In this document: piece by piece, positions 13,877 through 45,011 of the stretch
How positions within the stretch are numbered: the first letter of the stretch is position 1
Layout of the letters: every line of letters begins with the position of its first letter
Assembly (NCBI RefSeq): GCF_000143415.4
Contig: NW_003314400.1
Location: 248,001-312,000 of the forward strand
Direction of reading: 5' to 3'
Length of the DNA: 64,000 nucleotides
Source of the DNA: Selaginella moellendorffii
Taxonomy: Eukaryota > Plantae > Lycopodiophyta
Translations under genes and position numbers: made by a program
Notes under the pieces: generated by a model
What the model saw: the letters and a program-made list of their open reading frames with translations, nothing else
Told to the model about the DNA's origin: nothing
Database searches by the model: none

Positions 13877-14026
13877 TCTAATGAAAGGTGAAACCGTGTG
13901 ATGGTGCTCAAGATCCGTCATAGCATATATGGAATGGAAAATGTACATATGTGTGACATGGTGAACCGGTGAAGACTCGTGTCTCTCCACGTGGACTAGC
14001 CACGTGGCACAGGGCCACTCTCAACA
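13877..14026 (-). repeat. 3' LTR (150 bp)
   Basis: Matches 18261-18399 apart from 2 substitutions and an 11-bp indel. Confidence 0.95.
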
Positions 14027-17000
14027 CTCCCACTGGCACTGTGGCCATCACAAGTGATGCTCATCAGTGGAGAAAGTCCCAGCCCTTCGCGATGGACTTG
14101 AAATCGATCTCGGGGTAGTGCTTTTGTGAAGATATCTGCAACCTGAGTGGTCGTGTCGCAGTAGATCAGCTCAATTGTGCCATCTTCCACTTTCTCACGA
14201 ACAAAATGATGATGAATCCCAAAGTGTTTGGTGCGTGAATGAAAGCGAGGATTGGCCGCTAACGCAATGCAGCTTTGATTGTCACAGAAGAGGCGAGTGG
14301 GAGTCTTCACACTCACACCAAGGTTAGAAAGTAGTGAGCGTAACCACACACCTTCTTTGGTAGCTTGTGAGGCTGCCAAATATTCTGCTTCAGTACTAGA
14401 GGTTGCCACTGTACTTTGCTTCCTGCTGCACCACGAGACTGTCGCACTGCCCAGGGAAAACGAATAGCCAGAGGTGGACTTGCGTGTGTCACAGTCTCCC
14501 CCAAAATCAGCATCACAGTAGCCCGTGAGGGTAAGCGCTTTTCCCTGGTAGCACAATCCAAGGTAAGTAGTACCTCGAAGGTACCTGAAGATGCGTTTCA
14601 CCGCTGCCCAATGTTGAGATCCAGGATTAGCCAGGAATTGGCTAACTTTGCTCACGGCAAAAGAAATATCTGGGCGCGTACAAACAGCTGGATACATGAG
14701 ACTGCCAACAGCCTGTCTGTAAGGAATGGAGTCCATGGCTCTCTTGTCGTCCTCTGTCTCAGGAGACATGGCTCGTGAAAGCTGGCAGCCTAGTTCCATT
14801 GGTGTCGCCACTGGATTAGAGCTCGTCATAGAAAACCTGGCCAGCATCTCTTCTATATACTTGGCTTGGTGAAGATAGATAGTGCGTTGAGAGCGATCAC
14901 GCACAAGTTCCATGCCAAGAAAGTAGGAAGCCGAGCCAAGAGTTTTCATCTCAAATTGGCTGCAAAGATCTCGCTTAACCTGGAGAAACATTAAGCGATG
15001 ATTATGGATGACAAGAGTATCATCAACATAAAGAGCGATGATCACAAATGATTCACCCTCCACCCGAATATAAAGATTCGGGTCTGCCTCGCTACGGGAA
15101 AAGCCCACACTTAGTATAAAATCGTCAAAGCGTTTGTACCAAGATCTGGGTGCTTGTTTCAAGCCGTAGACAGCTTTCTTGAGAAGCCAGAGATGATCCT
15201 CTTTTCCAGTGGCTAGAAATCCTTCTGGCTGTGCCATATAGATTTCTTCTTCAAAAGAAACGCCGTGGTCACATCCATCTGTTCCAGATCAAAGTCTCCC
15301 ACCGCAGCAAAATTAATCAAGGAACGAAGAGTAGAATGCTTAACCACTGGAGCAAAGGTGTCGTTGTAGTCAAGTCCAGGAACTTGCGAGCATCCTTTCG
15401 CCACCAATCGCGCCTTGTAGCGAACCGAGCCATCAGGATTAAGCTTCAGAGCATACACCCACATGCTCTTGATAATCTGGCGATTGGAAGGCACAGTTGG
15501 AACAAGAACATGTGTCTCGTTCTTTTGCTGTGAAGCAATCTCGGCTTCCATTGCTACATGCCAGTAAGACGCTTCCTGTGAGGCCATGGCTTCTCCATAG
15601 GTCCTCGGAACAGTAGGAGTCCCAGCTGCACGAGAGGAGACCATTGTCTCGATGAGACGCTCAGTAGGCCGCCTTGTGCGGATCGATCTGCGTAGAGGAT
15701 CTGGAGGAGGCGGCGGGGTTGGTGGTGTTGGAGTAGAAGCGGCCATGGGTTGTTGCGTAGGGACTGTTTGAAGCAGCACAGTGATCGTGCCGACAGTCAA
15801 CTGATCTTGTTCCGCTTCAACGTCATTTTCTTCGGTCAAGGTAGGTCTGGAAGTAGAACCTTGACTAGAAGGAAGAAACGAATTCTCGTTGAAAACCACA
15901 TCTCTGCTCAGGATCTCCTGCTTCGTGATTGGATTCCAGAGACGATAGGCTTTGTGATCGAGGCTGTAGCCCACAAACACAGCCTTCTGGCTCTTGGGGT
16001 CCAATTTCTTCAGGGATGTGTGCCCACGCTTCACACCCGAATATTCTCAGATGCGTAACTGTAGGTTTCTTGCCACTCCATGCTTCTTCAGGAGTGATGT
16101 CAGCAAGGGCAGAGGTGGGGAGCCGGTTCTGGAGATAGTTCGCCGTCAAGACAGCGTGAAACCAGAAGCTGCGAGGCAAACCACTGGAAAGTAGCATTGC
16201 CCGAGCACTCTCCACTAGTGTGCGATTCTTGCGCTCAGCTACGCCATTCTGTTGTGGGGTCTCTCGCGTTGTAAGTTCTCGCACAATCCCTCCTGGCTCA
16301 CACAGCTGGTTGAAAGCATTGGAAGTGAATTCGCCTCCACCATCACTTCTCAATCGCTTGAGCATTTTCCCAGTTTGTGTTTCTCCCATATCCTTGAAAG
16401 TCTGGAAGTAGTGTAACGATTGGGATTTGCGAGCCATAGGGTAGATCATAGTGCGACGACTGTAGTCATCAATGAAACTGATAAAGTATTGGATACCTCC
16501 CACTGCTGTGGTGGCCATCGGGCCACACAAATCAGTGTGTACAAGTTCCATGAGCTCTGTAGTTCGAGATGCTCCAGTCTTGGGGAAAGGTTGGCGAGTA
16601 GATTTTCCGAGCTGACAGCCCTGGCAAAATGGAAGAACGGCTCTTGGGTCCAGGTCTAGACCTTCAACCATCTGCTCGCGTGCTAGCTGCTTGATTATAT
16701 CAGCACTAGGATGCCCCAGGCGTGCGTGCCAAAGCTCCAGTGAGTGACTGGTCGTTGTCTTTTGTGCGTGTAGGCCCAGACTCCGTCCAGCAAGATCTGG
16801 CAGCATGGTAAGGCGGTAGAGGTCACGCCGTCCAGGCCGGGACGCTGTGAGGATGGCTCCTGTGGTCGAGATCAGCTGGAATTGGCGAGGTGTAATGGCG
16901 AACTGATACCCATCCTCAGCAAATTGTCCCACAGAGAACAAATTAGCACATAAACCAGGAATATAAAGAACCTCGTGGATCTTTACGACTATTCCTTGTG

Positions 17001-18090
17001 GTAAAGTGAACTTGATGGTTCCAATTCCTTTCACTGCAAGCTGCTGGGCATTGCCAACGATGACATACTCCTCTGTGGCTGTAGGAACATAGGCTTCAAA
17101 GTACTTATCACTGTTGAACATATGGTCTGTAGCAGCAGAATCCAGGTAGATGCATTCTGCAGACAGTGCTGCCACAGCCATAGCTCGTGACAAGATGAAG
17201 GCGTGTACCACCTTTTTCTTTGCATTGTTCCTTACAGGCCTGAGAGATGGATTTTTCACCCCGCATTGAGCTTCGTCATGGCCTTTCTTGTTGCAATGAG
17301 AACACTTGGGCTTCTTGGATGAAGAGGCTCCTTGTTTCCCTTTGTTCACTGTTTCTTTCCTGAGAGAAGAGTAGAATGCAACGGCCTCTGATCCTGTTGT
17401 TGCTCTTCGTCTCAGATCATCGTCCTGGAGGCTACTGATCACGCCATTCAGGGTTAGAGGAGTTCCACTGGTAGTGAGGCTACGTATGAGAGGATCAAAG
17501 GATGGAGGAAGTGTGACGAGCACCAGCTCTGCTTCTTCTTCATCCTCTATGTTTGCTCCCACATCCTTAAGATCATCTAAGATGGTTCTCACACCAGCAA
17601 GATGATCCTTGAGGTCATCCCCTTCAGCCATCACCAATGCATGAAGCTGCTTCCGTAAAAATATGCGATGGGATGTTGAAGGGATCTGGTAAGTCTGCTT
17701 CATGGCCTCCCACGCTTCCTTTGCACTCTTGCACCGTCCAATGCAATGGAATTCTCGCCCCTCCAGCGCTGCATGGAATTTGCCCAAAGCTCTCCGGTCC
17801 TTCTTGCGATACTTCGCAGTTTCATCCACTGTAGCTGTATCTGGAAGTGTCTCAGTTCCTGTGGTGATGTCCCAGAGGCCTCGTTCATCCATATAGGATT
17901 CGAATTTTGTCTTCCAGAAGCGCCAGTTCCTCCCATCAAATTTTGGTGGATTTGCGTCCACTGAAACGATATCCGCTGTAGGCACAGTCGGATTTGTGAT
18001 GGGAGAGGAAATAGGTGGTGGATTTGGAGGCGGATTTGTAGGAACAGTGGCTGCCATGGGTGCCGACACCCAATCCCACCACTCGTTCAA
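13996..18090 (-). pseudogene. Copia gag-pol polyprotein in three frames
   Basis: Zn knuckle CSHCNKKGHDEAQC, protease YLDSAATDHM, LWHARLGH, integrase VHTDLCGP/LRSDGGGEF/QQNGVAER, RT YKARLVAKG/LYVDD, RNase H DADFGGD/ADIFTK. Deletion frameshifts at ~16010 and ~15250. Confidence 0.95.
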
Positions 18091-19327: not shown

Positions 19328-21205
19328 TCAAAGGCGGGAGACTGTGATTGAGATGCTTTTCAGGTACGCTTGCCACCCAGCGTGCATAATTCCTCTTCCA
19401 ACGATGATTATATCCCTCTGTCGGTCAGCAATCACCTATAACATCCACAGGAAGAATTTGCAAGTGTCTGGATGATATCCAAGACGGCCTCTTCGTTCTT
19501 GAACACGAGCTGCCGGAGCTGCTTGATGTTCCGGAGCTGTGGCACTCGATGCACGCAACGAAAAAAAGAGAAGAACCGAACGAGCAAAGAGAAGAAACGG
19601 ACGAACAAAACAGAAGAAAGGAACGAGCAAACAGAAGAAAACTCCTACATTTTCAGGAGTGCTGTACTGCTGGCCAAGATCATCGCCCCCGGCGCTCGTC
19701 TGCACTCCGGGAGTCATGTGGATGAATCCGGGATTGGCAGCTTGAGCCCACGCGCAGGATTTATGGAGATGAATCCCATGACGAAGTCTGGATTGTCCGC
19801 AGCCATTTTTTCTGCTGCTGCTGGGTACTCGCCCTGTGCTAGAGTTCCTTTGGAGCTCATCTCGGCAAGTAGCAGCAAACCCCGCCCCTTCGCCAGTCCC
19901 TATAGCCAACAAAAGACGTAGAGTTTACCATGAATGCTTGAAACTTTTTGGGACTTCTAAACCTTGAGCTTGAGACCGTCAATGCTTCCAGGGCCAGGCA
20001 CCATGTGCGCGTTTGTGATATCCGACCAGTCCACAATCTTAAACGGACCTCTACAAACAAAAACTCTGCTTTGAGTACAAAAACATCTGAAGTAAAAGGA
20101 TTGTATCTTACCCCTCGTACTGCATAGAAACCGTGTTGCTGATATCAGCAAACTTCCGGTCCTCAAAGATCATAAAATCGTGCTTCTCCGCAATCTGCAA
20201 ACACACATTTTGCATATCAGAGGCCAAAAGGAAAGACCATGAGAAGGAAGAAGCAATAGACTCACCGCACGAAGCTTGACTGTGAGCTCCTCGCTAAAAT
20301 CCGAGAGCACATCAACGTGCGTCTTGAGCACGCATATCTCAGGCCCGACCTGTATGACCATCACAAACCTTGGATTCAGTGACAAACAGAAAAAAGAAAG
20401 ACAAAACGAACTCACAGCGTCGGCAAGCTTGAGAAGCTCCTCGGACGTCGTGACGTCCGCCGCAACACTCAAGTTACTCTTCTTCTGCTCCATGAGGTCC
20501 AAGAGTTTCTTCCCAGCAGCATTCTGCGCAAGCACGGCCCTTTCTCCATACGCCAACCTCTTTGGCTTCTTGGCGGCGACAAGAGAAGAAGCAGTTGAAG
20601 GAAGCTCCGCCCTGTTAGATCGAACAAAGCTCTTCACGGACGCCGCCACCTCCTCGCGCACTCTCCCATGCTTCACCAGAACATCCACCGCGTAGGTCAG
20701 AGTGATGGCGGAGTGGAGCCTCAATCCATGCCTGCGAAGGTTGTCGCCGCCACCCTGCTCTCTATCGATCAACACCACCACGTCCGAGACCTTAAGCCTC
20801 GCGGCGGTGAGAGGCTCCACGGTCTCGAGCACCGATGCGCCGCTCGTCACTAGATCCTCGATCACCAGGCACGACTGGCCGCTGGAAAAGACGCCCTCGA
20901 TCGCCTTGCGGGTGCCAAAGTCCTTGACCTCCTTGATCACCATTGGCACATTGTGCGCGAGAGAGATGCACGTCGCGATGGGCAGCGCGGTGTAGGGGAC
21001 GCCGCAGAGGAGGTCGAACGGGGCGGCGCCGGCAACGGCGGCGGCGGCGGACCAGAGCGCGGCGGAGCAAATCAGGGTAGGAAACGATCACCCGGAGATC
21101 GATGTAGATTGGCGAGATGATGCCACTCTTGAGCTTAAACTCGCCGAATTTCACCGCCTCCGCGTCGGCGAGCGCAAGGACCAGCGCCGCCGCCGCCTCC
21201 CACAT
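19328..21205 (-). pseudogene. UMPS: UMP synthase (OPRT + OMP decarboxylase), intron-containing, disabled
   Basis: [86 protein letters not shown]. Frameshifts at ~21060 and ~19755 plus short deletions. Confidence 0.88.
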
Positions 21206-27888: not shown

Positions 27889-30800
27889 CTATCTGGCAGG
27901 ATTCTTACACTTAGTTCTTCCTTTCTTCTCGATCCCTGTCAAGGATTTGAGTATGGACGATACGCTCTGGAGTTGCGATTTAGCGTCTGCGAGCTTCTTC
28001 TCGGCCGAGATTTTCTGTGCGGCAGCGCCCAAGTAGAATCTCTCCAAGTTCCTGCGAGAGACAACCATGGAATGAACTCTCTCTCTGGAAGAACTCTATA
28101 AAATTGGAGAGAGCTTACTTGCGTTCCGCGTCTACTTTGCGCTCCAGGAGCTGCTTGACGTGATCCAGTCGACGTAAAACCAGAGGTTTTGAGCGAGCAA
28201 CGTCGTCGGCCGAGACCTTGCAAACCAGCTTGAGGACGTCGACAGCCTTGAAGAAGATCTCCTCCTTGTTCCTGGAAAATGCAAACGTTTCGAGCGTGGT
28301 CTGAGACGAGCAATTGTTACCTTGACATCTGGAGCTGCTCTGCGACCACTTCCAAAGAGGTTGGAGTGTTGAGAATGGTCGTAGCGAGAGCTGGATAGCG
28401 TGCCAAGTTGCCGAGGATGGACAGTGCGTGCTTTAAAACCTGCTCGTGCGGAGTGCTCCGGTTGGTTGTCTGAATCAGCTGGACAATCTTTCCGATTGCT
28501 CCGCCTTCCGCGATGCGGTCGCAGCAGTATTTCGAGTGACGAGTTGCTACGTCTGCAGCAGTAGAGTTTCCAGTTGCCGAAGTCAAGAAAAGTCGAGGAA
28601 GAAAGAAAAGAGTTACCTATAGTCGCACATATGTGAAGAATGCTGCTGACAGTCTTAAAACTCAGGAGCAATGCAAGAGCCTCGTTCAGGCGATTTCCAA
28701 GAGTCATGTTGCAGTCGACAGTTGCCGCAGCGTACTGAATGCGCAGTCGCAGCTGATATAGCTCGTTGGTTTGTACCTTCCGCGTATTGTAACCTTTCCA
28801 AAAGGCCTGAGACAAACTCACGTTATACCGGGGAAAGCATAGAAACTTGTACCTGAATGAGAATAGCAGAGGAAAGGATCTTCTTAAGCAGAGTGCGAGC
28901 TTTCCATCCACGATAACATGATTGTATCGTAGTCGCGGCCTGCTTTCTCTTATGAACGTGTGCTGCTTCATCGGATCCAGTGCGCTTCCTGGAACAGAAT
29001 CCACGCCAATAGGATTGCAAAACTGTTGCAGCTCCGTCCAAATTTCTAGACGCTTTCTGAAAACAAACAGTCAACTCGTTACAAACGCTGTTCATTACGT
29101 ACCTTTTTACTTGTTTGTCTCGCCTTCCAGCATTCGTAAGCGGCTTGTGCAATATTAGCAGCCTCCGCCTTCTTCCTCTGAACGTGTTTTCTCCATCTCG
29201 ACTGTATTCTCCTGGCTGCTGAGTTCACAACAAAACTTCGGGTCGCCAACCAGCTTCTGAAACAAGATTGGATGTGGGAAGCAGCGAGCTTAAGTCGCAA
29301 ATAGCTTCTTTGAGCTCTTCGTCGTCTGTAATGGGCTTCAAGAAGGACCACCGCGTTCCTGTACGAGCTAAACCTTTTCTGAGCAGCATATCTCCTGTAA
29401 CATTTTTGAATCAGAGTCGCAGCTCCCGTCCAGTTCGATATCCGTTGTCTCACCAAGAAGCCACGAAAAACTGCCTGTATCTTGGTCACCTTTTCCTGTC
29501 TGCGCTCTAGAATCCGTCTCCACTGCTGTTGCACAGAAACAACGCGAGCCTTGAGCAAAGCGTATGAGCTACGATCAACATAGCCCCTCCATGATGCTTG
29601 AATTCTTCGAATGCTGGACAAAGTCGTCTTCAACCGCTTCTGTTGATCCCAACGCTTATAATGTGCCTGAATTACTGTTCCTGCAGCGCGCCTTTTCTCG
29701 TAAGTTCTTCGATCGACCACAGCGCGCCGTCTCTGCTCGATTCTTTTAACTGCGCATTTTGTCAACACGAACGTTCTGCGAGCTACAAAACATCTCCAAG
29801 CTGCCTGGATAGTAACTGCACCATCGACAATTTTCCTGTAGTTCTTCCTCCATTTCCAGCCCCTATAATTTCCCTGGATAACTACTGCTGCAGCTCGTTG
29901 TTCACGGAACTTCCTGCATTCCAGTGCAGCCGCCACCTTCCTGATGAACCACCTTGTCCGCACATAAGCTCGACGGGCTCTAAAGCATTTCCATGCAGCC
30001 TGGATGGTAACTGCACTCTCGATCATCCTTCTGTACTTTCTCGTATGATTCCAGCCCCTGTAACTTGCCTGGATAACTGTGACTGCAGCTCGTTGTTTCC
30101 GAAAAGTCCTTTTGCTCAACACTGCTTCCCACCTTTGCTCGATCTTTCTAACGAGGAGTTTTGTGAGGAAATACCTCCCGCGAGCAACAAAGCTTCTCCA
30201 TGCTGCCTGGATTTTAACTATACTATCAGCCACCTTCCTGTAACGTCCTCTCTGCGTACTTCCTCTATAAAATGCTTGTATGCGCAGCACGGCGTTTGTT
30301 ATCCTCAGCGTAGACGCTTCTTTTCTCGCTTGAAGGAAACTTCGCCATGCCTTTTGAATAATCGTGGCAGCATCGATCTTGCGCTTAAGGGACTTCCGAA
30401 AGAGAAACCGTTTCCAGCAGCACTGAATCTTGCATACGGCCAGCCTGGTATTAGTGTATACTCGTCTCGTTTTCCAGCCTCGATAACAGCATTGGATACG
30501 TATCGCTGAATCGTCCAGTCTTTGGATTTTCGTCACCTCTGTGTGAATACAAACCATAAGCGAACTCCAAACAGAATGCAGGTTAATATGAATGAACTGA
30601 CCTTCCGATTGAAGTGCATCCTTCAGCACCTGCAGCCAAAACTATCTTATTGTTGTTCAAAACTCAAACAAACACAAATTTTGCAACCTGGAGATCCTCG
30701 CAAACAAGCTTTGAGAACATTAGTGCCAAGAGAAAAATCGCATTTTTCTCCATCCAGAAGGAATTCATGGCGCCACCATTACAACATTCTAGCACCTGGA

Positions 30801-33265
30801 GGACGCCATTAGCTGCAAGATGAACTGGCGACATCGTCAAATACAATACCTTTTGCAAAAACCCCATTTTTTTAGTCACATTATACAGTATTTGAAAGTG
30901 ACAAGGACATCCATTGGACTGTCAAGGACCACCGAATCGTTAGTGAAGAGAAAATGCTACGAATTTGAAAATTATGACCTCTGGAGAGGGCTCGAAGGCT
31001 TCTACAGGCAAACATGCCGGAAGATAAAAATTGATAAGGTAGCATGATGCGCGTGCAATAAAAAAAGGCGTCTTGAAGTTTTGTAACTCGAAACCGTATG
31101 ATTTGCATACCATCTGTAACAAGGAAAAACTCCGTTCCCAGTTTTCTAGAATTTGATATACCTTTCCCCATTTCAAAAGAAGATCAGAAAAATTCAAAGA
31201 CGAATAATCAACTGGAAACTGCAATATCATCATTGTGAGAAAACAAAGCACTGTATCCATTAAGTACCTCGGAGCTTTTGCATTCTATGCGAACAATTTC
31301 TTGTACAAGCGCCTCCTTGCTTAAAAGATGTGGTATCTGCAGACGCAGCAGTTAGGCAACCAAGAATCGACAGCGGAAGCAAAAACCTGCACTTGGATTA
31401 GAATGTTCCAGGCAAGGGCGAGCATTATCTCATGGTCCCCGTCAACAATAAAATCCGCAGAAATTGCATATCCATGTTCGTCTTCGAGAGAAACTCCAGC
31501 TCGAGAAAGGATTTCAAGGGCAACGTCACAGTTATGCTTTTGCCGTTTCCTAAGCGTTGGTGGTAGCTGGATTTTCTGCAGTCACGAGTAGAGTCAGAGA
31601 AACTTACGAGCACCAACCAACCTTTACACCGGAAGTGTCGCCCGATATTACTTGTGCTAATCTGCACAGTCGAACGCCATCTTGAAAATCTTTGAAACTT
31701 GTAATTTGAAAGTTGAACTCGATCAAAGAAGTCTGTAAGAAACTCCATGTCAGTCAACGATCAAGGAAACAGAAAGCTAAAACCTGGACATGAATCAACC
31801 GATAGCCTACAGTGCTCAGATGAGCCATCAGATCTCCTTCTCCATGCATAGCGTTCTTTAAAATATCTGAAAGCGCACAGTTTACTGGTGAGCAGGCTCT
31901 ATCATTTTGCTTACCTTGCAATGCCTGACGGCTCGACTTGATCACCGAATCTCTACGAAACAAAAGGATTGATCCGCCATCGAGGCCGTCTATACCACGG
32001 TCGTTTTGTAGAGCAGTTTGACATCTCAGTCGATCGAGTACTAGAACGAAAATGAGTAGCCGTTTAAGAATGACCCTTCCAAGAGCCTCGTGATAACCCT
32101 GCCGATATAATCCTTCAACAGTTCTGCGAGACAAAAGTGTCAATGTTGCAGAGTCGAAACATCACTTACTTGTTGGTTGAGTAGCATTTTGCAATTCCAG
32201 CATGGACAAAAAATTCCTGCTCGAGCATGCTTTCTAAGTATCTCGCGTCGTTATTGTCAGCGTCGCTTCCGAAACTCAAGCCGAGTACGATATAAAGCCC
32301 CAGCTTAAGCCACGGCGGAGAAAAGCCCAGGAGGACATCGACTGCTTTCTTCCGCAGCCCGACGTCAGCAAGAACAGCACAGCCATCTTTCATCCTCAAT
32401 TTTCCGTCATCTATACGCTGATAAAAATAAAAAGAAAAACGAAAGAACTAAGTTACAATCTCACATTCGATCTTCATACCTTGCCTACTTGAAGCATGAT
32501 GGAAACAATCTCCTCTCGACATACTGGATCAAACTGCGTGCTCAGACGTTGCCGGAAACTTGACAGAGTAAACAGTGTTCGCAGGCTTTCGTTTTCCTTT
32601 CCCGTCAAAGCACTTCCTCTAGCTTCCCCGTTGGATCTGAAAGATGTTGCTTGCTCCAAGTTTCTCGAATCATTCTTTCTAATCTCCCCAAAGTTGGCGG
32701 CTTGCGGTGTCACCACACCAGCCTTCTTCACTGCCTGTTCCAGAACAAGATTGAACCAGCTCACGTAAAGCTTTTCCTGCGACCGTAGCGAGTTTTCTCT
32801 CTTCGCGACCATTGTTTCAGGATAGTCGACTGGCTTGTTTTTCTTCTTTCCGGACAGAGGTGGCCGCAAGACCGCTTGCTTCGATCGGAGAGGCTTGGAA
32901 GCTGTTCGTGACGACGTTTTCTCAAAGTCGATCGACGGCGAGTAAGGGAATAGAACATTATTTTGCCTGTTGCTTGCCTTCAAGGGTGTGATTTGCGACG
33001 AGAACGAGCTCCGCAAGCGTGGGGGCAGCAGTGGTCCAGGCGGGAGGGAGACACAACTGATCTTGCTATGGAAATTCTCATCGTTCTCGCACGCCTGTGG
33101 AGCAGCTTCTTTCGGCTTATCAATCTGCGTCTTGTCAGCGCGAGAAATCCTGCCCCTGGTGGACACATTCCCGCCCGGCGACGTGAAAACCAGCGGACTC
33201 TGGCACCAGAGGATGAAATCCGCGTCGAGCCTCGGATCTTGGCGCTTGGAAACCGGCGTATCCAT
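27889..33265 (-). CDS. ASPM: Abnormal spindle-like (ASPM) homolog, multi-exon
   Basis: ASP-type CH-domain region (ADVGLRKKAVDVLLGFSPPWLKLGL, GEGDLMAHL), a long IQ-repeat exon (IQxxxRG/IQAAWR) and a C-terminal ARM-like segment. The start codon is uncertain. Confidence 0.9.
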
Positions 33266-33530
33266 CAAATCCCTCTACGTTACCCTGATTCGCAGACACA
33301 TATATCCTGATTCTCCAAAAGGAGAGAAATGGACCTCTAGTACCTCACAGATGCGATCGTCCTCCTTCGATCGCCATCGCCATCGCTTCTTCACAATATG
33401 ACCGTTAGACCTAAAACCGCAGCCGTTCGATCTACTCTGCCAATCGAACGGTCCAAAATTCGAATGTTTGGGTTTAACCAGGAATATGCTTAAATAAGAT
33501 ATATACGAAGAATATACTCGTCATTTGGAA

Positions 33531-34524
33531 TCAAAAGAGGGTCACAATGGACTGGACTAACGCATTGGGCATGGAGAAAAATGGGGAATGATCTGAATTG
33601 AGCTCCAAAACCTTGAGTGGAGGGGTCTGCTTGATCATCTCCTCCTGGATTTCCAGTGGAATGGTTTTGTCCTTCTTAGCTTTGATGTAATAGCGAGGAA
33701 CTTTGCCATAGTTTGCAACAGTGAAGCTCACAGTGGGATCAAAGTATGGGAATGGTTTTAGTATCGACTTGGCAAGAACAAAGTCCTGGAATTCAGCTGT
33801 TTTAGAAACTTTGTTTGAAGCTCCTCATAGTTACCTGTGGAGGAGATCTCTGGTATAGCATTTCTCGGGCATGCTCGGGCTTAAATGAGCCAGCAGTAAC
33901 AGAGCCATTTCTAAACGAAAGTATGAATTTGTCTCCAAGTCCTTGCGCGATCTTTCAATGAGATTTAGATTCATTAGAAAGCAATCTAAGATCCAAAGAT
34001 ATGGATGCTTACCTTGTTGTAAATGCTAAGGGCTTGAGATCCATTGCTAGGGAGCATAATAGCAGTAATGTAAACAGCTCCAGAGATTTTCTGGGGGAAT
34101 CTTTCCATAGCATATGTAAGAGAAATGCCCCCTAAACTATGTCCGACCAAGATCACCTGCAAGAACGATAGAAAATTAACAGGAACTTCTCAAAGTATAC
34201 CTTGACGTTTGCTGGCAAAGACTCGAGCAATTCGATCAAAGGGACCGAGTAAGTCTCCAGGTTACCGACGGTTTTTGCATCCACGCCGTTGGTCCCAGCG
34301 CTGGTTAAATCCACAGCCTCCACCCTGTGGCCCTCTTGTTCCAGCTTGTGTGTGACTTTGTACCAACACCAGGCACCATGGCCAGCTCCATGAACTAAAA
34401 CAAAATGGAGCTTCTTAGGAACCTTTTGCTCTAGTTTGACACCATTGGCGACCAAAACATCACAAGATGAAATGTAATAGAGCACAATCCAAGTGATGAG
34501 AACGATCAAACTATGATCAAACAT
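33531..34524 (-). CDS. MES/SABP2-family alpha/beta-hydrolase A with signal peptide (4 exons)
   Basis: HFVLVHGAGHGAWCWYK, VILVGHSLGG, KKDKTIP and SDHSPFFS, with a hydrophobic N-terminus. Confidence 0.9.
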
Positions 34525-34659
34525 TGTAAATTCTGTACAGGCATTTAGGCTTTACCAAGGTTTTCTATGCTGACTAAAAAATAGTGTTCCTCGTGCATGT
34601 CGTCAGTTGGCTTTGACTGCCACATAGGATATTATCTTGACTTTGTTTGAATCATTGAA

Positions 34660-35600
34660 TTTACATGATAGAATGAACTAAGTTCTTGTGCTTTGAGAAA
34701 AATGGAGAATGGTCTGAATGAAGCTCTAGAACCTTAGCAGAGGTGTCTGTTTATCGTACACTCTTGACTGTCCAGTGGAATGGTGAAATCTTTTGTGGCT
34801 TTGACAAAGTAAGGAACACTTCATAGTTTGCTGCGGTGAAGATCACGGTAGGGTCAAGAAACGGGAATGACTTTAGAATTGATTTGGAGAGGACAACATC
34901 CTGTAAGTGATTTCAAAGATGGAGATCACGAAGGAGAATTAAAATCATGCATTCTTATCACCTCTGGAGGAGATTTTGGGTATAGAAGTTGTCAAGAAAG
35001 CTCTAGCTTAAGCGAACTAGCAGCAGGTGTTGAAGAGGAGCCTTTACGAAATAGAGGCGCTTCTAAATCATACAAATCTCCCATGGCTTAGTGTTAATTA
35101 TATGGCTGTAGTTTAGTAGAATTTCAATAGAATTATAAAATTCTATAATAATAATAATAATAATATGATTCAGTACCTGGTTGAAAACAATTCAAGCTTG
35201 AGTGGCATTAAGCGCAGTTACAAAAAAAGATCCAGCAACTCTCTTGGAAACTTTCCATGGCATATGTAAGTGAAAGACCTATGAAATCACCTGGATATTT
35301 CATACAGTTTATATAAAATGAAATATATGTGATTATCTTTTCCTTTGAAGCAGTCGGACCAAAGAATCCGATTAAGTCTCCAACTTATCCACTGTAAGTA
35401 CATCCATACCGCTCGTTGCAACGCTAGTTAAGTCCAGCGGATCCACTTGGCCTGTTCCTCAAGCCCTTGTGTGACTTTATACCAGCCGCGGCCAGCTCCA
35501 TGCATGAAGTGGAACTTACTGGATTCATGGTTGCTTGCTTGTGCGAGGATAGCACAGGTGTGAGGAGAATCAAAGAGATAATGAGGTGAACCATTTGAGC
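34660..35600 (-). pseudogene. Decayed MES paralog B
   Basis: Co-linear with MES-D/F but with deletions through the oxyanion and GHS motifs. Confidence 0.85.
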
Positions 35601-35811
35601 TATACAAATTTTGCCACTATAGACAAACCGTATAGAAGAACCTTGTAGAAGAGCGTAGAAAAATCGGGTGAACTATATCATCACTAGTCGTTCAGAAGTC
35701 ATTGTTGGAAAAGACTTCTAATTTTTTTTTACTGGAACATTTTGACTTTGACACGGACTTCTTAAAGATGTACATTATATTATTACATGCTTTTAAATCC
35801 TCATTATATGA

Positions 35812-36777
35812 TTAAGCCAGAGACAATAGCAGCTTCACTAACGCAAGTGGGGTGGAGAAAAATGGCGAGTGATCACTGTCAAGCGTTAAGACTTGGAGTG
35901 GAGGGTTCTCGTAAATCATTTCCTCTTGACGTGCCACTAGAATAACTTGATCCTGGAGTGTTTTGATGAAGTAACGAGGAACACCTCCATAGTTGGCAGA
36001 GGTGAAGTTCACAGCAACATCGAACAGCGGGAATGGCTTAAGCAGTGATTTCGCCAAAATAACATCCTACGTAAAAGTATCTGTTAATGAAAACTTCTAA
36101 GCTTTGTTTGTTTACCTGTGAAGGAGATTTGTTATATAGCACTTGTTGGGCGCGGTCTAGTTTAAATGCAGCAGCCGAAGGTACCGTGGAGCCATTTGAA
36201 AATATCAGTGTCAAGCTGCCGGGAGTTCCCTTTCATAATGAAAGCGACTAAAATAAAAAACTAACAATCAAAATAATTACCGGCTGGTTGAAGATCTCCC
36301 GAGCCCGAGTTGCATTGTGAGAAAACATAAAAGCAGCGAGATAAACAGCTTTGGAGATTCGGCTAGGCATTTTCTCCAAGGCGTATGTAAGCGTGATTCC
36401 TCCCGAGCTATGGCCAACCAAGATCACCTGAAAGTTTCAATAGAAGCGAGAAACTCAAATTCCCCCAAAAAACTTACACAACTTACTGTGTCATTCACGG
36501 ACTCAAGCATCTGGATCAAGGGAGCCGAATACCTCTCCACGCTACCAACGGTGGTAGCATCGACACTGCTCGTTCCAGCACTGACCAAATCCAAGGTGTC
36601 CACTTGGTGGCCAGATTGTTGCAATGCATTCGCGATTTTGTACCAGCACCACGCACCATGGCCAGCTCCATGAACAAGAACAAAATGGTGTTTCTTGGCA
36701 TCCACAATTTTACCAGAGACTGGGAACTGGAGAAGAAAGAGAACAACTATGCCTAAGAAGGCCGCAATCCATCCCAT
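35812..36777 (-). CDS. MES/SABP2-family hydrolase C with signal peptide (4 exons)
   Basis: MGWIAAFLGIVVLFLLQF..., HFVLVHGAGHGAWCW, GHSSGG, LQDQVI and SDHSPFFS. Confidence 0.9.
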
Positions 36778-36919
36778 AGCCCTGTTGATCCAAGAAGCAA
36801 TCTGAGTCTTACAAAGATTGTTTAAGTTAAAAAACTTGCGAGTATAAAAGAATATACTTTATTCGATAGCATGCTTTAGCGAGTATTTTTGAACCTTAGG
36901 TATATTCGTTTGTGGAACT

Positions 36920-37300
36920 GATAGTTAGCTTACCTGTGAAGGAGATCTGCATTTCTCTGGTGCTCTAGCTTAAATGAGCCGGCAGTAATTCCAAACAAAA
37001 GTGTCTCCAGGTCCTTGGGCGATCTTTCAATGAGATCTAGATTCAGTAGAAGCAATAGATGCAAAGATATAGATGCTTATCGAAGGGGCCAAGTAGTTTT
37101 CCAGGCTACCGACTGTGGTTGCATCCACGCCGTTGGTCCCGGTGCTCAGTTAAATCCATAGCGTCCACCCCCTCTTGTTCCAGCTTGTGTGTGACTTTGT
37201 CCGGTTAAAAGCTTTCTGAAACTTTTGCCCATGGGCGATTAAAACATCACAAGATGAAGTGTAATAAAGTGATGAAGACGATCAAACTATGATTAGACAT
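36920..37300 (-). pseudogene. Decayed MES fragment (MES-A-like)
   Basis: Blocks match 33830-34520 (AAATGAGCC, GCATCCACGCCGTTGGTCCC, AAACATCACAAGATGAA). Confidence 0.8.
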
Positions 37301-37352
37301 CAGACATTTTGTAATAAGCCGGCCTAGAAATACAGTGACTGCCACAATTTCT

Positions 37353-38338
37353 TTACTTTTTGACAAAATCTTTGACCACTGACATGATAGAGTGAACTAA
37401 GTTCTTGGGCATTGAGAAAAATGGAGAGTGGTCTGAATGAAGCTCTAGAACCTTTTGCGGAGGATTCTGCTTGATCATGTCCTCTTGACGTCTCAGTGGA
37501 ATGGTGCGGTCTTTCGTGGCTTTGATAAAGTAGCGAGGAATACTTCCATAGTTTGCTGCAGTGAAGCTCACGGCAGGGTCAAGAATCGGGAATGGCTTTA
37601 GAATCGATTTGGCAAGGACCACATCCTGTAAGTTGGAGAAAGATTACAAAGGAGAATTGACAACAGTAAAATTTATTACCTCTGGAGGAGATTTTTGGTA
37701 CAGAAGTTGTCGAGCAAACTGTAGCTTGAACGAAGAAGCAGCAGGTGTTGAAGAGGAGCTATTACGAAATAGAGGTGTCATATATTTTTGTAAACCTTGA
37801 GTAATCTGTAATATAGAATTATAAAATAGTAATAATTATTATTATTATAGTACCTGGCTGTAAGCTCGCCGAGCTTGAGTTGCATTCGAAGATAGCATAA
37901 GCGCAGTTACGAAAAAAGATCCAGAAATTCTCTCTGGAAACTTTTCCATGGCATATGTAAGTGAAAGACCTGCTAGACTATGCCCAACTAAAATCACCTG
38001 GAAATTTCATACAATTTACAGTCATTCCTTTGATAAAATAGATGTGTTACCTTTTCCTTTGGTGGAAGTGATTCAAGCAGTTGAACCAAAGGAACCGAGT
38101 AAGTCTCCAAGCTATCCACTGCAAGTGCATCCACACCACTCGTTCCAGCGCTGGTTAAATCCAGTGCATCCACTTTGTGGCCCTGTTCCTCAAGCTCTTG
38201 TGTGACTTTATACCAGCACCATGCTCCATGGCCAGCTCCATGCACTAGAACAAAGTGGAACTTACTAGATTCCTGGTTGCTTGCTTGTGCGAGGATCGCG
38301 CAGGCAAGGAGAGTCCAATAGATAAAGAGATGAACCAT
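37353..38338 (-). CDS. MES/SABP2-family hydrolase D with signal peptide (4 exons)
   Basis: MVHLFIYWTLLACAILAQA, FVLVHGAGHGAWCW, GHSLAG, TKDRTIP and SDHSPFFS. Confidence 0.9.
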
Positions 38339-39869
38339 TTGTGCCACTACTGTGTAGAAGAACCGTATAGAAGTAGAAGAGCGTAGAACAGATGGGCAAA
38401 ATATATTGTCACCAAGTCGTTCAGAAGTCTTTGTTGGAGAGGACCTCTAGTCTTTTTGACTGTAACTTTTTGACTTTGACTTACTTGACTATTGACTAGA
38501 ACTTACTGGATTTATGTTTGCTTGCTTGTGCAAGGATAACATAGGTAAGGAGAATAATGAGATTTGAGTTAAGGGCCAACCCATCCAGTGTATGAGGGGA
38601 ATTTTTTTGGTATATATGGAATTCAAAAACCATAACATGGAATTTTAGGGCAACTAAGCTCTTGTCCGATAAGCTTTTCAAGCTTGGATGTTTGGCTTCC
38701 TCCTTGGGCTCTTGTTGAAGAATCTGTTTGTTCTATATTTTTGCATAACTATTTCAAATTTTTGAAGTTTTTCCTGTAGCAAGTCCAACTTAATTCTTTG
38801 TTCATTTTCTTTTTGTTTCTCTCCAACTTTTGTGCTTCTTTCACTGCTGTTGTTTGTAAGTTGAAATTCTCCCATTAGCTCTTCTAATCAAACAATCTCC
38901 TGCATAAACTTCCTCAATTTTTGTGGCCTTTGCTGGCAGTAATGTATTCTAAGTTGTTCCATAGGGAAAACCTCTACCTCTCCCATGTTTGTAATTACTG
39001 TTGAGTTTACGTGAAAAATAACATTTGTGAGCTGAGCCATAAATTTCTTTCATTGTTGGCTAGTGAGGGGGAAATTTTCTTAGTGGTCATTTCCTCCCAG
39101 CGGTCCGCCTGTCAACCTATTGACTATCTCTGTAAGAATATTTAAATATTGTACTATAAACTTTTTTATCTCCATAAATTTGAAAAGGAATATAACGAGA
39201 ATCCAAAACTATTTTGTCAAGCTTTGAGCAGGCAAGTAAAAAGATGATACAATATGACGTGTATGCTCCACCAGGACAGAGATAACTAGAGCGTAGTCTA
39301 GCACTTGTTCCTGCGGTATAAAGCAAGTGTCCAAAAGTCTTTCAAGTAGAAAAGATCAAAGCGAAAGCTTACCGGCTTTGTGATTGAAAACTGGTTCATG
39401 ATATCCATGCATTGTCGGTCTTGTCCTCCTTTGCTGTGACTCCAGCAGCGCTTGGAGACGATTCATTGGAAGGAGCCGGAGGCTGGGAAGGCCTTCTTCT
39501 CTCGTGACAGAGCTCGAAACATCAAGCACATCCGTCGTCGTTGGCGATTAAGATCCTGACCATAAAAGCGGGATATATGTTCTCCAAGAAAAAGCATTCA
39601 GTTATGTGTAAGAGCACCAAATACTGAGTATACAATGAGCAACATATCGACAATTCAGGCAACGTAACATAAGCACTTGTGTATGTGAGGAAAAACACAT
39701 ACCAGCGGCAAGTTTGTATGAGATTCCAAGCTCTATAGCTGCAAAACCAGGGATCCAACACAGTGATGAGACAAGATGCTCTCGAAGTATGACGTGGTGC
39801 TGACAGGCACACGACATTACCATGGAAAATTCAGCGAAGAGAAAAAATCGACACCTGGGGATCAGAATG

Positions 39870-40447
39870 TGCCTAAGCCCAAGCTACACGTGGCAAAATC
39901 CAAACCACCCATGACGAGAACGTCTCCCATGTATGGCAAATCCGGGACTTTCGATTCCATGTGCGGGACCCAACGACGCTAGTTTTTGATCGAATTCCAG
40001 TGTGGGACGTGGTTTGCTTAAATTCCATTGTCATGGAATGTGATTATTTCGGTGTATGGAGATTTTCTCGAAGCAAAGAAGCTATTCGATAGGATGGAAC
40101 GAGATTCTCACAACAAAAGACTGATCAATCCAGACTCGACGATCGTTGCGCAGAGATCTTGATGGAGCACGAAAGTTCTTTGCGAGGACGACACCGTGTC
40201 ATGAGCAACACTTACCAACTCATTTGCGTAGCATGGCTGCACTATTCTAGCAACAAGGATGTCAAACTGCGATCAATCTCTTTGATTCAATGACCGTTTT
40301 TCTAACAAAGACAATACTCGTCAAGGAAAGAAGAGAAAGAACAAAAACGAGAAAGGAGAAAAGCTCGAGATTAACAATTTTGGGGAGGAATTAGAATATG
40401 ACAGGTGAGGAGAATTAGTCACGTAGCTATTTTTCTTCCGTGAGCTT
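39870..40447 (+). repeat. Dispersed repeat, second copy of 21661-22070
   Basis: Direct sequence match in blocks. Confidence 0.85.
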
Positions 40448-40585
40448 CGCAGCTTATAAAGTTCTTAAGTTCCATCCTTCGTATGTAAGTTCTTCACTAA
40501 ATTACCACTTTGTTCTATGTAAAGTTCTTCGCTATGTTTTTCTTCTGTGATTTTCACAAGATTTCTTGCAAGGTTTAGGGTTTAG

Positions 40586-41175
40586 GGAGGAGCTCTTGTT
40601 CCTCAGAGCTCACTGTAGCAATCGTTCCAGCAATCGAGCTCCACCTTTGTCTTGCGTGGAACTACCGGTTCTGGAAGCTCTCGGCGGTTTCCAGGCCTCC
40701 GCAGCTGGCGTACATGTCGAGCAGTGCGGTTGTGAGCACTGCATTGTCTTCCAGACCACCGGTCTCCAGAAGTTCCTGGTAGAGGAGCTTGCCTTGCACT
40801 GGAGCTGGAATATGCTTGAGCAGGCACTCCATCTGTAAGCAGTGACGCCATCCAGCTGCATTCTCGCGAAGAGCGACAGAGTCATCTCCAGATCCCCGAC
40901 TTGGGCGTGAGCCAAGACGATGGACGTCCAGGAGCTCACGTTCTTGCTCGCCATCTTTCAAAAATTTCCCGAACGCCCTCTAGTCTCCCAAGCTTGGCGT
41001 TCAGGAGCGAGTGCCACAAGGGTATGTTGGAAGCAAACTTGCTCTCTTCGATCAGTTGAGTGGCAATTACTTCTGGAAGATCTTTCTGACCAGAGCAAGC
41101 AAGAGCGAAGCAGAGAAATCAACAGTGACGCAAGTCACCGGAGATGGCTTTACTCGATCCAGCTCCATCCGTGTC
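40586..41175 (-). pseudogene. PPR fragment, duplicate of 10960-12130 with internal deletion
   Basis: GAGGAGCTCTTGTTCCTCAGAGCTC and TTCAAAAATTTCCCGAACGCCCTCTAGTCTCCCAAGCT are shared. Confidence 0.85.
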
Positions 41176-41898
41176 AACAGCAACAACGCCTCAACAAAAT
41201 GCCTATTCTGCGCAGAAGCAGAGACCACGAGAAAAGATCTCTGTTCCAGATGCCCGCAAACACTTTATATGCTAGATCAAGCTTGCCTGTAGTATCGTGT
41301 TTCCGACGAACTGGTCTTCAGCGCCTCGCTGAAACAAAGCTGTGCACGCAACGAATTTGTGCTAGACTATTCTCTTGTACGGACCATTTGAGAAGAGACA
41401 CAGAGGCTCTCGACACTGCCGGGTTGACATCCACGGTTCGCGAGTGATCTCCATATCTTCGCTTCCATCCAGGTCTCCATGAACTTGGCATTCACAGATT
41501 CGAATCCGCTGCAAACTCATCTAGCAGGATTGATGCATCCCATGACCAAGGAGCAAGCTCTAAACCAAGAACTCCCCAAGAACAATCTGTGGTCCTCCCC
41601 AATCAAAAATGGCTTGCGCTCGGTGAGCCCATCCGCAAACTTGTAGAGGCAATCTGTATAACATTTCTAGGGTTATATGGCAATAGCTTTCGTTCTTATC
41701 ATGGTCAACTCTTTAAAGTCTTGAATCTGGAAGGCTTCATGGGATCGCTTGCTGCCCGACACGTTGGCTTCAATGGTTTCTGACTAAGATCTAAGCCTGT
41801 TTTAAACCCTAGAATGCAAAAGGCTGCTTATATAGATATATTCCATGAGCCATTCTTCAAATAAATTGCTTATTTTGGTGCCACAAGGGATCTTGTTA

Positions 41899-42866
41899 TT
41901 AAGCCAGAGACAATAACAACCTCACCAAAGAATGTGGGGTGGAGAAGAATGGCGAGTGATCACTGTCAAGCGTTAAGACTTGGAATGGAGGGTTTTCATG
42001 AATCATTTGCTCTTGACGCGCCCGTAAAATCGTTCGATCCTGAAGAGTTTTGATGAAGTAACGAGGAACACGTCCATAGTTGGCAGAGGTGAAGTTCACG
42101 GCAGCATCGAACAGCGGGAATGGCTTAAGCAGTGATTTCGCCAAAACAACATCCTACTTACAGTACGTGAAAGTATCTGTTAATGCAAACTTCTAAACTT
42201 TGTTTCTTTACCTGTGAAGGAGATTTGTTATATAACACTTGTTGGGCGCGGTCTAGATTAAATGCAGCAGCCGTAGGTACCATGGAGCCATTTGAAAAGA
42301 TCATTTTCAAGTTGCCCGGAGTTCCCTTTCATAATGAAAGCAAAAAACATAAAATATAAAAATAAACATAGCCAATAAAAATAATTACCGGCTGGTTGAA
42401 GATTTCCCGAGCCCGAGTTGCATTGTGGGAAAACATAAAAGCAGCGAGATAAACAGCTTTGGAGATTCGGCCAGGAATTTTCTCCAAGGCGTATGTAAGC
42501 GTGATTCCTCCTAAGCTATGTCCGACCAAGATCACCTGAAAAAGCGAGAAACTCAAATTCGCCCAAAAACTTGCACAAACTTACTGTGTCATTCAGAGAG
42601 TCAAGCATCTGGATCAAAGGAGCCGAATAATTCTCCACACTACCAACAGTGGTAGCATCGACACTGCTCGTTCCAGCACTGACCAGATCCAATGTATCCA
42701 CTCGGTGACCGGATTGTTCCAACTCATTCGCGATTTTGTACCAGCACCACGCACCATGGCCAGCTCCATGAACAAGAACAAAGTGGTGTTTCTTGGCATC
42801 CACCGAGAATGGGAATTGGAGAAGAAAGAGAACAAATATGCCCAAGAAAACCGCAATGCATCCCAT
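41899..42866 (-). CDS. MES/SABP2-family hydrolase E with signal peptide (paralog of C)
   Basis: MGCIAVFLGIFVLFLLQF, HFVLVHGAGHGAWCW, GHSLGG, LQDRTI and SDHSPFFS. Confidence 0.9.
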
Positions 42867-42871
<5 letters not shown>

Positions 42872-42931
<60 letters not shown>

Positions 42932-43113
42932 AATGTAGTTGACGTGCATACCTTTTAAAACTTATGCGGTCCCATGCAAAAGAGAGTAGGAATGTAGGTG
43001 ACGCACATACCTTTCAAAACTTATGGTCCCATGCAAGACCCCACAGAGAGAGAGAGAGAGAGAGAGTAGAAATGTAGATGACGCGCATACCTTTTAAAAA
43101 CTTATGCGGTCCC
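42872..43113. repeat. (AG)~28 microsatellite followed by three copies of a ~45-bp unit interleaved with AG tracts
   Basis: AG run at 42872-42927, then TAG(A/G)AATGTAG.TGACG..CATACCTTT.AAAACTTATG..GTCCC three times. Confidence 0.9.
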
Positions 43114-44039
43114 CAAAGAGATCTAGTTTGACTTTAAAAAGAATATACTTAAACTTAATATATTTTTTACGAATATTCATTTGGGGCTGTTGAAAGAGCC
43201 GTGCATCAGCCGATTCGAAGAGCCAATTGAACCAGTTCAAGCAAGAGCACACTCACGCAACGATGCCATGGAAAAGACCACTCCTACCTTTCAAGAGAGG
43301 AGATGTGGTAGTTGCGATGCTCAATTCTTTCGAGGAGGAAAAGCTCTAGTTGCTCGACGATAAAAGACTCTCAGCTGCAGGCTTTGGAAGAAACCAGGAA
43401 CGTTGTCGGCCGAAGACCTTGCAAACTAGCTTAAGGACGTCCACGGCCTCCAAGAAGATTTCCTCCTTGTTCCTGGAAAAGTGCTACTCAGCCAACAAGT
43501 GATGGTTTGGCTTTGGCTACATCGTCTCTTAGAGCTGTTGAAGGACTATTATATATCAGCAGAGTTATCACGAGGCTCTTGGACTGCTGATTCTACTCAT
43601 TGTGGTTGTAGTACTCGATCGACTCAAATGTCGAACTGCTCTGGTATGGCGGATCAAATTCTGTTCACAGAGAATTGTAAACAAACAAAGATTTAGACTT
43701 TTATTTGCTTTTATTAACAGATATTTAACTGTAACTATGGACGTGTTCCTCGTTACTTCGTCAGAACTCTCCTGGATCGAGCGCAGTGGCTCGTCAAGAG
43801 TAAATTTCACGAAAACCATCTATTCCAAATCTTAACACTTGTCACTCGCCATTTGCTTTAGTGTTGCTATTGTCTCTGCTATGGAATAATCCAGCAAGAA
43901 GTTCGTGTCCAAGCGAAAAAGCTCCGGTCAGGAAAAGGCTATAGACAATAACTTCTGAACAACTAGTGACCATATATTTCACCACATTTTCAATACTTCT
44001 ATACAGTTTTTCTTGAGTGGCAGAATTTGTATTGCTACA

Positions 44040-45011
44040 ATGGTTCATCTCTTTATCTATTGGATTCTCCTTGCCTGCGCGATCCTCGCACAAGCAAGCA
44101 ACCAGGAATCTAGTAAGTTCCACTTTGTTCTAGTGCATGGAGCTGGCCATGGAGCATGGTGCTGGTATAAAGTCACACAAGAGCTTGAGGAACAGGGCCA
44201 CAAAGTGGATGCACTGGATTTAACCAGCGCTGGAACGAGTGGTGTGGATGCACTTGCAGTGGATAGCTTGGAGACTTACTCGGTTCCTTTGGTTCAACTG
44301 CTTGAATCACTTCCACCAAAGGAAAAGGTAACACATCTATTTTATCAAAGGAATGACTGTAAATTGTATGAAATTTCCAGGTGATTTTAGTTGGGCATAG
44401 TCTAGCAGGTCTTTCACTTACATATGCCATGGAAAAGTTTCCAGAGAGAATTTCTGGATCCTTTTTTGTAACTGCACTTATGTTCACTTCAAACGCAACT
44501 CAAGCTCGACAAGATTTCAACCAGGTACTGAATCCTGAATCATATTATTATTTTGTCATTTTATAATATTCCATATTGCAGATTTTTCAAGGAATTCAAC
44601 CATATATCACACCTCTATTTCGCAATGGCTCTTCTTCAACACCTGCTGCTGCTTCCTTCCGGCTAGAGTTTGTTCGAAAAGTTCTATACCATAAATCTCC
44701 TCCACAGGTGATCGTACTATGTCAATGCTCCTTCGTAATCTTTTCTATCATTACAGGATGTTGTCCTCGCCAAATCGATTCTAAAGCCATTCCCGGTTCT
44801 TGACCCTGCGGTGAGCTTCACCGCAGCAAACTATGGAAGTGTTCCTCGCTACTTTATCAAAGCCACGGAAGATCGCGCCATTCCACTGGAAAGGCAAGAG
44901 GACATGATCAGGAAGACTCCTCCGTTCAAGGTTCTAAAGCTTCCTTCAGACCACTCTCCATTTTTCTCAATGCCCAAGAGCTTAGTTCACTCTATCATGT
45001 CAGTGCTCTAG
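44040..45011 (+). CDS. MES/SABP2-family hydrolase F with signal peptide (inverted paralog of D)
   Basis: MVHLFIYWILLACAILAQA, GHSLAG, TEDRAIP and SDHSPFFS. Four exons with GT-AG introns. Confidence 0.9.

Follow-up and report, generated by a model that had tools for sequence, protein, structure and literature searches.

A Selaginella moellendorffii array of MES/SABP2-family esterase genes with signal-peptide-like leaders

The window, a 64,000-nt stretch of the Selaginella moellendorffii genome (contig NW_003314400.1, positions 248,001 to 312,000), carries at 33531-45011 five intact four-exon genes of the MES/SABP2 family of alpha/beta-hydrolases, four on the minus strand (A, C, D and E) and one, F, on the plus strand (Table 1). 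Their models were made by joining exons from the open reading frame (ORF) listing and the three-frame translation, with GT-AG introns of 44-63 nt. The original prediction, made from the letters of the DNA, had five apparently intact genes and at least three relics in an interval whose limits prove to be the exact outer ends of genes A and F; five genes were rebuilt, with at least four decayed copies among them. All five are called genes on the annotated record GL377704.1 (332,063 bp; GCA_000143415.2), which has the opposite orientation and whose locus L001 is identical to window positions 25812-46777, and the same array is present on the scaffold of the other haplotype, GL377608.1. The genes are already annotated and belong, as ordinary members, to a known family; the novelty lies in a targeting variant, a hydrophobic leader ahead of the catalytic domain, and in its breadth.

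The sequences support the assignment of all five genes to the MES/SABP2-family serine hydrolases with the catalytic triad intact. Database searches covered exon 1 and the database proteins identical to C, D and F, and the joined models of A and E were compared locally. Exon 1 alone matches the MES16, HNL, MKS1, SABP2 and PNAE structures at E values of about 1e-17, and full-length F matches the MKS1, MES16, SABP2, PNAE and HNL structures over residues 25-269 at 4e-46 to 1e-28 (phmmer E values for F of 4e-46 with MKS1, 1.8e-44 with MES16 and 1.6e-42 with SABP2). The Pfam domains are Abhydrolase_6, Abhydrolase_1 and Hydrolase_4. For F (P0152), an AlphaFold model based on 50 homologues has a mean predicted local distance difference test score of 96.2, contains the alpha/beta-hydrolase core with a helical cap, and superposes on MKS1, SABP2 and MES16 (3stt, 1xkl/1y7h and 5hk8) with template modelling (TM) scores of 0.83-0.90 and root-mean-square deviations of 1.5-2.6 Å.

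The Ser-Asp-His triad that had been read in each intact gene is borne out in all five by residue and by codon. The motifs are GHS, K/Q/E-D and SDHSPFFS, and in a 50-member alignment their columns show at least 90% conservation. In SABP2 and Arabidopsis MES1-10 and MES16-18 (Group III, PMC11644291) the fold is the same (TM 0.83-0.90, 35-37% identity), the triad residues lie in the same GHSxG, D and DH motifs, and the first strand and loop likewise read HGxxHGxWxWYK; MES16 also has SDHS-FFS after the catalytic His. Tomato MKS1 is the best match in the PDB (E 4e-46, TM 0.86-0.90, 37-38% identity), and it has Ala and Asn at the positions of the Selaginella nucleophilic Ser and Asp, so the Selaginella proteins look like hydrolases and not decarboxylases. 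The window proteins also carry the esterase-type motifs HG…, GHS and DHS, which we take to contrast with HNL-type residues. The variation between paralogs after the nucleophile (GHSLGG, GHSSGG, GHSLAG) is present as described, and may weakly hint at substrate divergence. The ratio of nonsynonymous to synonymous substitution rates between the older paralogs is 0.22-0.30, indicating that the genes are under purifying selection.

All five proteins begin with a hydrophobic leader. The first strand, HFVLVHG, starts at residue 28-40, so that a segment of 27-39 residues precedes it, and the leaders that had been quoted for the intact genes were found again as export-type segments of 19-28 residues. 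They were judged by rule-of-thumb features, namely the hydrophobic h-region, the charge and the (-3,-1) rule. Each has an uncharged h-region of 14-17 residues followed, 2-11 residues on, by a (-3,-1)-compliant site; the candidate cleavage sites are ANG/V in A, VSG/K in C, AQA/S in D and F, and VDA/K in E (the slash marks the cut). Cleavage there is predicted to leave a mature N-terminus 4-12 residues ahead of the first strand, like that of the cytosolic relatives, and a protein of cytosolic-MES size. The characterised relatives were expected to start close to the HFVLVHG strand, and indeed the solved MES, HNL, PNAE and SABP2 chains begin 3-11 residues before it and have no hydrophobic leader. 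In the AlphaFold model of F the leader is a single helix (residues 2-20) followed by a 7-residue linker. From the end of the leader to the first strand, none of the five models has an in-frame Met at which a leaderless protein could start; such an isoform would have to come from another transcript. None of the models ends in a C-terminal H/KDEL. Two relatives from the same clade, P0009 (MK…) and P0003 (…K5), have textbook signal peptides with a basic n-region.

RNA reads were mapped over 33450-38650, which covers genes A, C and D and the start that D shares with F. For gene C, reads of two stranded raw-read RNA-seq runs span 35712 to 36755 and confirm all three introns. Their depth is 42 over the leader-coding stretch 36582-36755 and drops to 2 just upstream, and this sharp drop upstream of the ATG indicates a short 5' untranslated region (UTR) and no upstream exon; a loose end at 36753 spells the leader of the other haplotype (MDCGIL…). 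Assembled contigs from two other runs splice out all three introns of gene D, and one of them extends to 38360, 22 nt 5' of the ATG. Nine reads placed on the start of D continue into the 5' UTR of F itself (loose end at 38339), joining it to the ATG, which shows that F is transcribed with its leader. Gene A is weakly expressed, with intron 2 confirmed by 7 spliced reads. The leader-coding part proposed for the 5' exons is thus present in the transcripts of C, D and F, which do not begin downstream of it, and in these mRNAs the leaders appear, from their features, to be built like endoplasmic reticulum (ER) signal peptides.

The N-glycosylation sequons NAT, NGS and NFT listed in the original prediction are present, NFT only in C and E among the five. 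Two sequon positions (NAT/NGS and NGS/NSS) are kept in all five genes, and the third (NFT) is found in C, E and other members of the clade. Across the family, leader-bearing MES have 1.21 sequons per 100 aa, leaderless MES 0.45 and MES11-like proteins 0.67. The 2.7-fold difference in density between leader-bearing and leaderless proteins (Mann-Whitney p=7e-9) is between proteins that are not phylogenetically independent, and the excess persists when Selaginella is left out (mean 2.9 vs 1.15 sequons). Mean cysteine number is 2.0 in leader-bearing MES vs 4.3 in leaderless MES. In the Selaginella clade, 2-6 sequons and 0-2 Cys are found in the members with leaders, against 0 sequons and 3-4 Cys in the leaderless pair P0056/P0168. 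C and E, with 5 and 6 sequons, lie above composition-matched shuffles (P=0.005 and 0.003).

The family set of 277 proteins came from an exhaustive profile search with C exon 1 and a homologue search with F, and 137 catalytic domains were placed in a quick maximum-likelihood tree with Shimodaira-Hasegawa-like approximate likelihood ratio test (SH-aLRT) supports. The tree was built without PDB reference sequences such as SABP2, and placement relative to Groups I-III of the family review is inferred from by-similarity names. A 9-row clade (SH-aLRT 97) unites the window genes with their alleles and is nested in a 15-row Selaginella-only clade (SH-aLRT 95), in which 13 rows have leaders. The only leaderless members are the tandem pair P0056/P0168, which is genuinely leaderless since a stop lies upstream in frame. 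This pair (MAKFVFVHG…) is at 1241-3930 of L003 on GL377582.1, and offers a natural cytosolic control. The MES11-like proteins form a separate clade (SH-aLRT 100) with extensions of more than 70 residues in 47 of 50 rows; Selaginella has its own members there (P0255/P0267), and the window genes are not inside it. On this evidence the RefSeq names "putative methylesterase 11/13, chloroplastic" are transferred labels without support in the sequences. The Arabidopsis MES11-15 type (Group I, PMC11644291), from which these names come, shares the family and the Pfam domains, but it belongs to that separate clade with long extensions, unlike the window leaders of 27-39 residues.

These observations are best explained if the proteins, of a family that in flowering plants is known only from the cytosol, work in the secretory pathway by way of a cleavable N-terminal ER signal peptide, a reading that we consider reasonably probable from the sequences. 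Each protein would be made with such a peptide and cut at its candidate site (AQA/SN in D and F, VSG/K in C, VDA/K in E, ANG/V in A). After translocation into the ER lumen it would be N-glycosylated at two to six sites, two of them conserved in the cap region, and the soluble enzyme, as large as a cytosolic MES at about 240-250 residues, would then move along the secretory pathway. There it would hydrolyse small carboxylic esters by its Ser-His-Asp triad (Ser103/Asp225/His252 in F). The sequon excess and the few cysteines fit a lumenal or extracellular enzyme and may be taken as supportive, if not decisive. The apoplast is one possible end point, and the vacuole, the ER or a membrane anchor are possible too. 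Hydrolysis of MeSA (methyl salicylate), MeJA (methyl jasmonate) or MeIAA (methyl indole-3-acetate) and a role in defence, as first suggested for these genes, would be pure conjecture.

Several points weigh against the secretory reading. The signal-peptide call rests on rule-of-thumb features. The n-region has no basic residue in any of the five window leaders, with a net charge of 0 or -1, and A, C and E are net positive after the hydrophobic stretch, where the positive-inside rule could favour the opposite orientation. A basic n-region is often absent from eukaryotic signal peptides. RNA support for the leader is limited to C, D and F, exon 1 of gene A being without read cover and all of gene E lying outside the mapped span. 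A, D and F, with 2 sequons each, are not significantly above shuffles. Independent contrasts of leader against sequons and against cysteines number only 7 and are not significant in a sign test, and the large Mann-Whitney differences are therefore taken as suggestive only. No proteomic or localisation records were found for these proteins.

The (-3,-1)-compliant site after every leader, h-regions shorter than the 18-25 residues typical of anchors, and the classic cleavable-looking peptides of the clade relatives make it unlikely that the leaders are uncleaved signal anchors, which would give type II membrane esterases, located in ER, Golgi or plasma membrane, whose catalytic domain would be lumenal or extracellular. 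Such an anchor would still suit the hydrophobic stretches, whose length, 14-17 residues and reaching 17 in A, is on the high side for signal peptides, as well as the second uncharged stretch of A, VLVANGV, after one Asp, and the loss from E of the VSG/K site of C by a 3-residue deletion, leaving only VDA/K. The sequon excess is equally compatible with type II topology.

It is harder to reconcile that excess with a P450-like N-terminal anchor, in which the N-terminus would be lumenal and the catalytic domain cytosolic, tethered to the ER surface. The lack of basic residues ahead of the hydrophobic stretch, the net charge of +1 to +2 after it in C and E, and the K-rich segments (KKHH, KVPKK) ahead of the first strand agree with this topology, but it is C and E, with this charge pattern, that have the strongest sequon excess, and cysteine is down to one per domain. 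Sequon excess and cysteine depletion have no reason in a cytosolic domain and so count against the P450-like anchor, as do stretches shorter than the typical anchors of about 20 or more residues and the absence of a Pro-rich hinge; we regard it as improbable. That the proteins are plastid or cytosolic enzymes, with the leader a transit peptide or untranslated, has only a transferred database name in its favour and is very improbable given the position of the genes outside the MES11-like clade, leaders that, unlike transit peptides, are short and strongly hydrophobic (Kyte-Doolittle 11-residue maxima of 2.2-3.3) with few Ser/Thr or basic residues, and a leader that is in the mRNA with no alternative start.

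Signal-peptide-like leaders are not confined to this array. A simple hydrophobicity screen finds them in 49 of the 277 proteins, including those of other Selaginella loci, Ginkgo (Gb_14833), Pinus taeda (PITA_30081), Cryptomeria ("methyl jasmonate esterase 1 isoform"), conifer transcript contigs, Nymphaea ("methylesterase 17-like"), the liverwort Marchantia paleacea (Mapa_010362), Humulus ("pheophorbidase-like"), Cinchona (a hypothetical protein), Cannabis, Clitoria and Amborella. In the named proteins of other plants the leader is of the same type, taking up 23-45 residues before the first strand, with sequons raised as noted above. The trait is therefore recurrent and not unique, with examples from gymnosperms, water lilies, a liverwort and some eudicots. 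The leader label needs at least eight changes on the tree, so leaders were gained or lost repeatedly, and since the leader-bearing MES of other plants also occupy at least seven other places in it, they are not orthologues of the Selaginella cluster. The idea of a lineage-expanded subfamily holds insofar as the tree has a Selaginella-only clade, and gives way insofar as leader-bearing MES occur in many other land plants. To our knowledge, none of the leader-bearing MES of other plants has been characterised, and such a leader is missing from all MES enzymes that have been (SABP2, the MeJA and MeIAA esterases, PNAE, MKS1 and the HNLs). Compared with SABP2 and its Arabidopsis relatives, the Selaginella proteins add a leader of 19-28 residues, have more sequons and almost no cysteines.

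The 2024 review of the MES family (PMC11644291) includes S. moellendorffii and defines Groups I-III, with no characterised member in Groups I and II, and makes no mention of signal peptides, subcellular location or apoplast. A survey of the tomato MES family gives cytoplasm, chloroplast and plasma membrane as the only predicted locations. A well-described secreted MES clade to which these genes might belong, the possibility that would have undercut the original prediction, was not found in the open-access papers searched, and the main text of a Marchantia cell-wall proteome paper lists no such esterase.

Among the Selaginella MES outside Group I, eight leader-bearing loci stand against one leaderless tandem pair. 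A broader proposal, which we put forward as doubtful, is that export-type MES are an old, recurrent and overlooked branch in non-flowering plants and early-diverging angiosperms, that the non-Group-I MES of Selaginella are nearly all non-cytosolic, and that they cleave esters in the apoplast or vacuole. If this were true, methyl esters (possibly MeSA or MeJA) or wall-bound esters would be cleaved in the apoplast or vacuole, unlike in the cytosolic model of SABP2. SABP2 acts in systemic acquired resistance. With a secretory-pathway subclass, some of the ester hydrolysis in plants would be located in the cell wall, vacuole or ER, the uncharacterised MES groups would gain a property open to testing, and the "chloroplastic" RefSeq names would be corrected. 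Until localisation and substrates have been measured, the practical value stays modest.

Table 1. Esterase genes, decayed copies and the repeated tract at 33531-45011 (window positions).
Feature	Position	Strand	Exons	Predicted leader	Triad	Remarks
Gene A	33531-34524	-	34524-34201, 34156-34013, 33951-33835, 33785-33531	34524-34441	Ser115, Asp234, His261	MES-family esterase, 279 aa; homology model
Relic B	34664-35607	-				Near full-length decayed MES copy; many stops and frameshifts; nucleophile motif gone
Gene C	35812-36777	-	36777-36487, 36427-36281, 36229-36116, 36066-35812	36777-36712 (MGWIAAFLGIVVLFLLQFPVSG)	Ser104, Asp223, His250	268 aa; identical to XP_024522091.1 (P0151)
Relic	36930-37296	-				A-like 5' fragment with leader stop and first strand deleted, plus exon 3-like piece
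Gene D	37353-38338	-	38338-38051, 37997-37854, 37805-37680, 37625-37353	38338-38282 (MVHLFIYWTLLACAILAQA)	Ser103, Asp225, His252	276 aa; identical to S. moellendorffii database protein P0160
D arm of inverted tract	37849-38339					Near-identical to F arm, 44039-44529; 491 nt, 97%
Leader-only fragment	38496-38681	-		…ILAQASKHKSSKF		D/F-type exon 1; from ORF listing
Gene E	41899-42866	-	42866-42585, 42535-42389, 42325-42212, 42153-41899	42866-42795	Ser101, Asp220, His247	265 aa; joined model; 265-aa called gene on GL377704.1
Relic	43727-43852	+				E-like exon 4 fragment; catalytic His motif gone
Gene F	44040-45011	+	44040-44327, 44381-44524, 44582-44707, 44757-45011	44040-44096	Ser103 (44399-44401), Asp225 (44871-44873), His252 (44952-44954)	270 aa; identical to XP_024522086.1 (P0152)

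Gene A as called on GL377704.1 has a different 3' end from the homology model, in which the exon 3 acceptor was placed by homology. The GenBank model of 314 aa (allele P0161, 307 aa) loses the conserved C-terminal helix by splicing and has an unrelated tail instead, and its 3' end was judged less likely than the one at 33531. Plus-strand RNA reads overlap 33450-33800, near the 3' end of gene A (region 33275-33531).

The locus is best explained as a tandem, partly inverted array in which five genes are functional and at least four copies are dead. Relic B matches residues 39-267 of D at 34% identity in tblastn, with in-frame stops, and the relic at 43727-43852 matches residues 204-247 of E at 50%; the leader-only fragment gave no significant tblastn match. 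RNA depth over the relics is zero within the mapped span. A further weak tblastn match at 20251-20856 (E 0.002, 26% identity) lies inside an unrelated gene and was dismissed as chance. On GL377608.1 the stretch that matches E and D by position (L002 4043-9414) is annotated as a single fused 813-aa model, which is probably a gene-model merge.

D and F share a near-identical tract, with arms inverted and 5.7 kb apart, that runs from the ATG through exon 1 and intron 1 into the 5' part of exon 2. Between the two genes, exon 1 is free of synonymous differences and intron 1 is identical, vs a proportion of synonymous differences (pS) of 0.11-0.20 elsewhere. In exon 3, which encodes part of the cap region, the ratio of the nonsynonymous proportion to pS is 0.91. 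Gene conversion of the 5' half, with the cap diverging, is a probable origin for this pattern.

Between D and E, at 39500-41500, one ORF resembles the ORF at 11415-12254, with which it shares the motifs LSLFARMQLDG and VLTTALLDMYAS; it is possibly pentatricopeptide-repeat-like. A (GA)n/(CT)n run lies immediately upstream of the ATG of gene E (about 42870-42960). Farther away on the minus strand, 1193-4651 has tandem copies of a Pro/Ala-rich ORF of about 260-310 aa, and 13996-18090 has a long ORF pair with the look of a copia-type retrotransposon, its translations judged by eye. The cluster is flanked at 27889-33265 by a CH/IQ-repeat gene of 1489 aa, and on the opposite side, right of 45700, by a 151-aa gene and a DUF26 (Stress-antifung) receptor-like kinase. 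This arrangement of flanking genes is common to both haplotypes.

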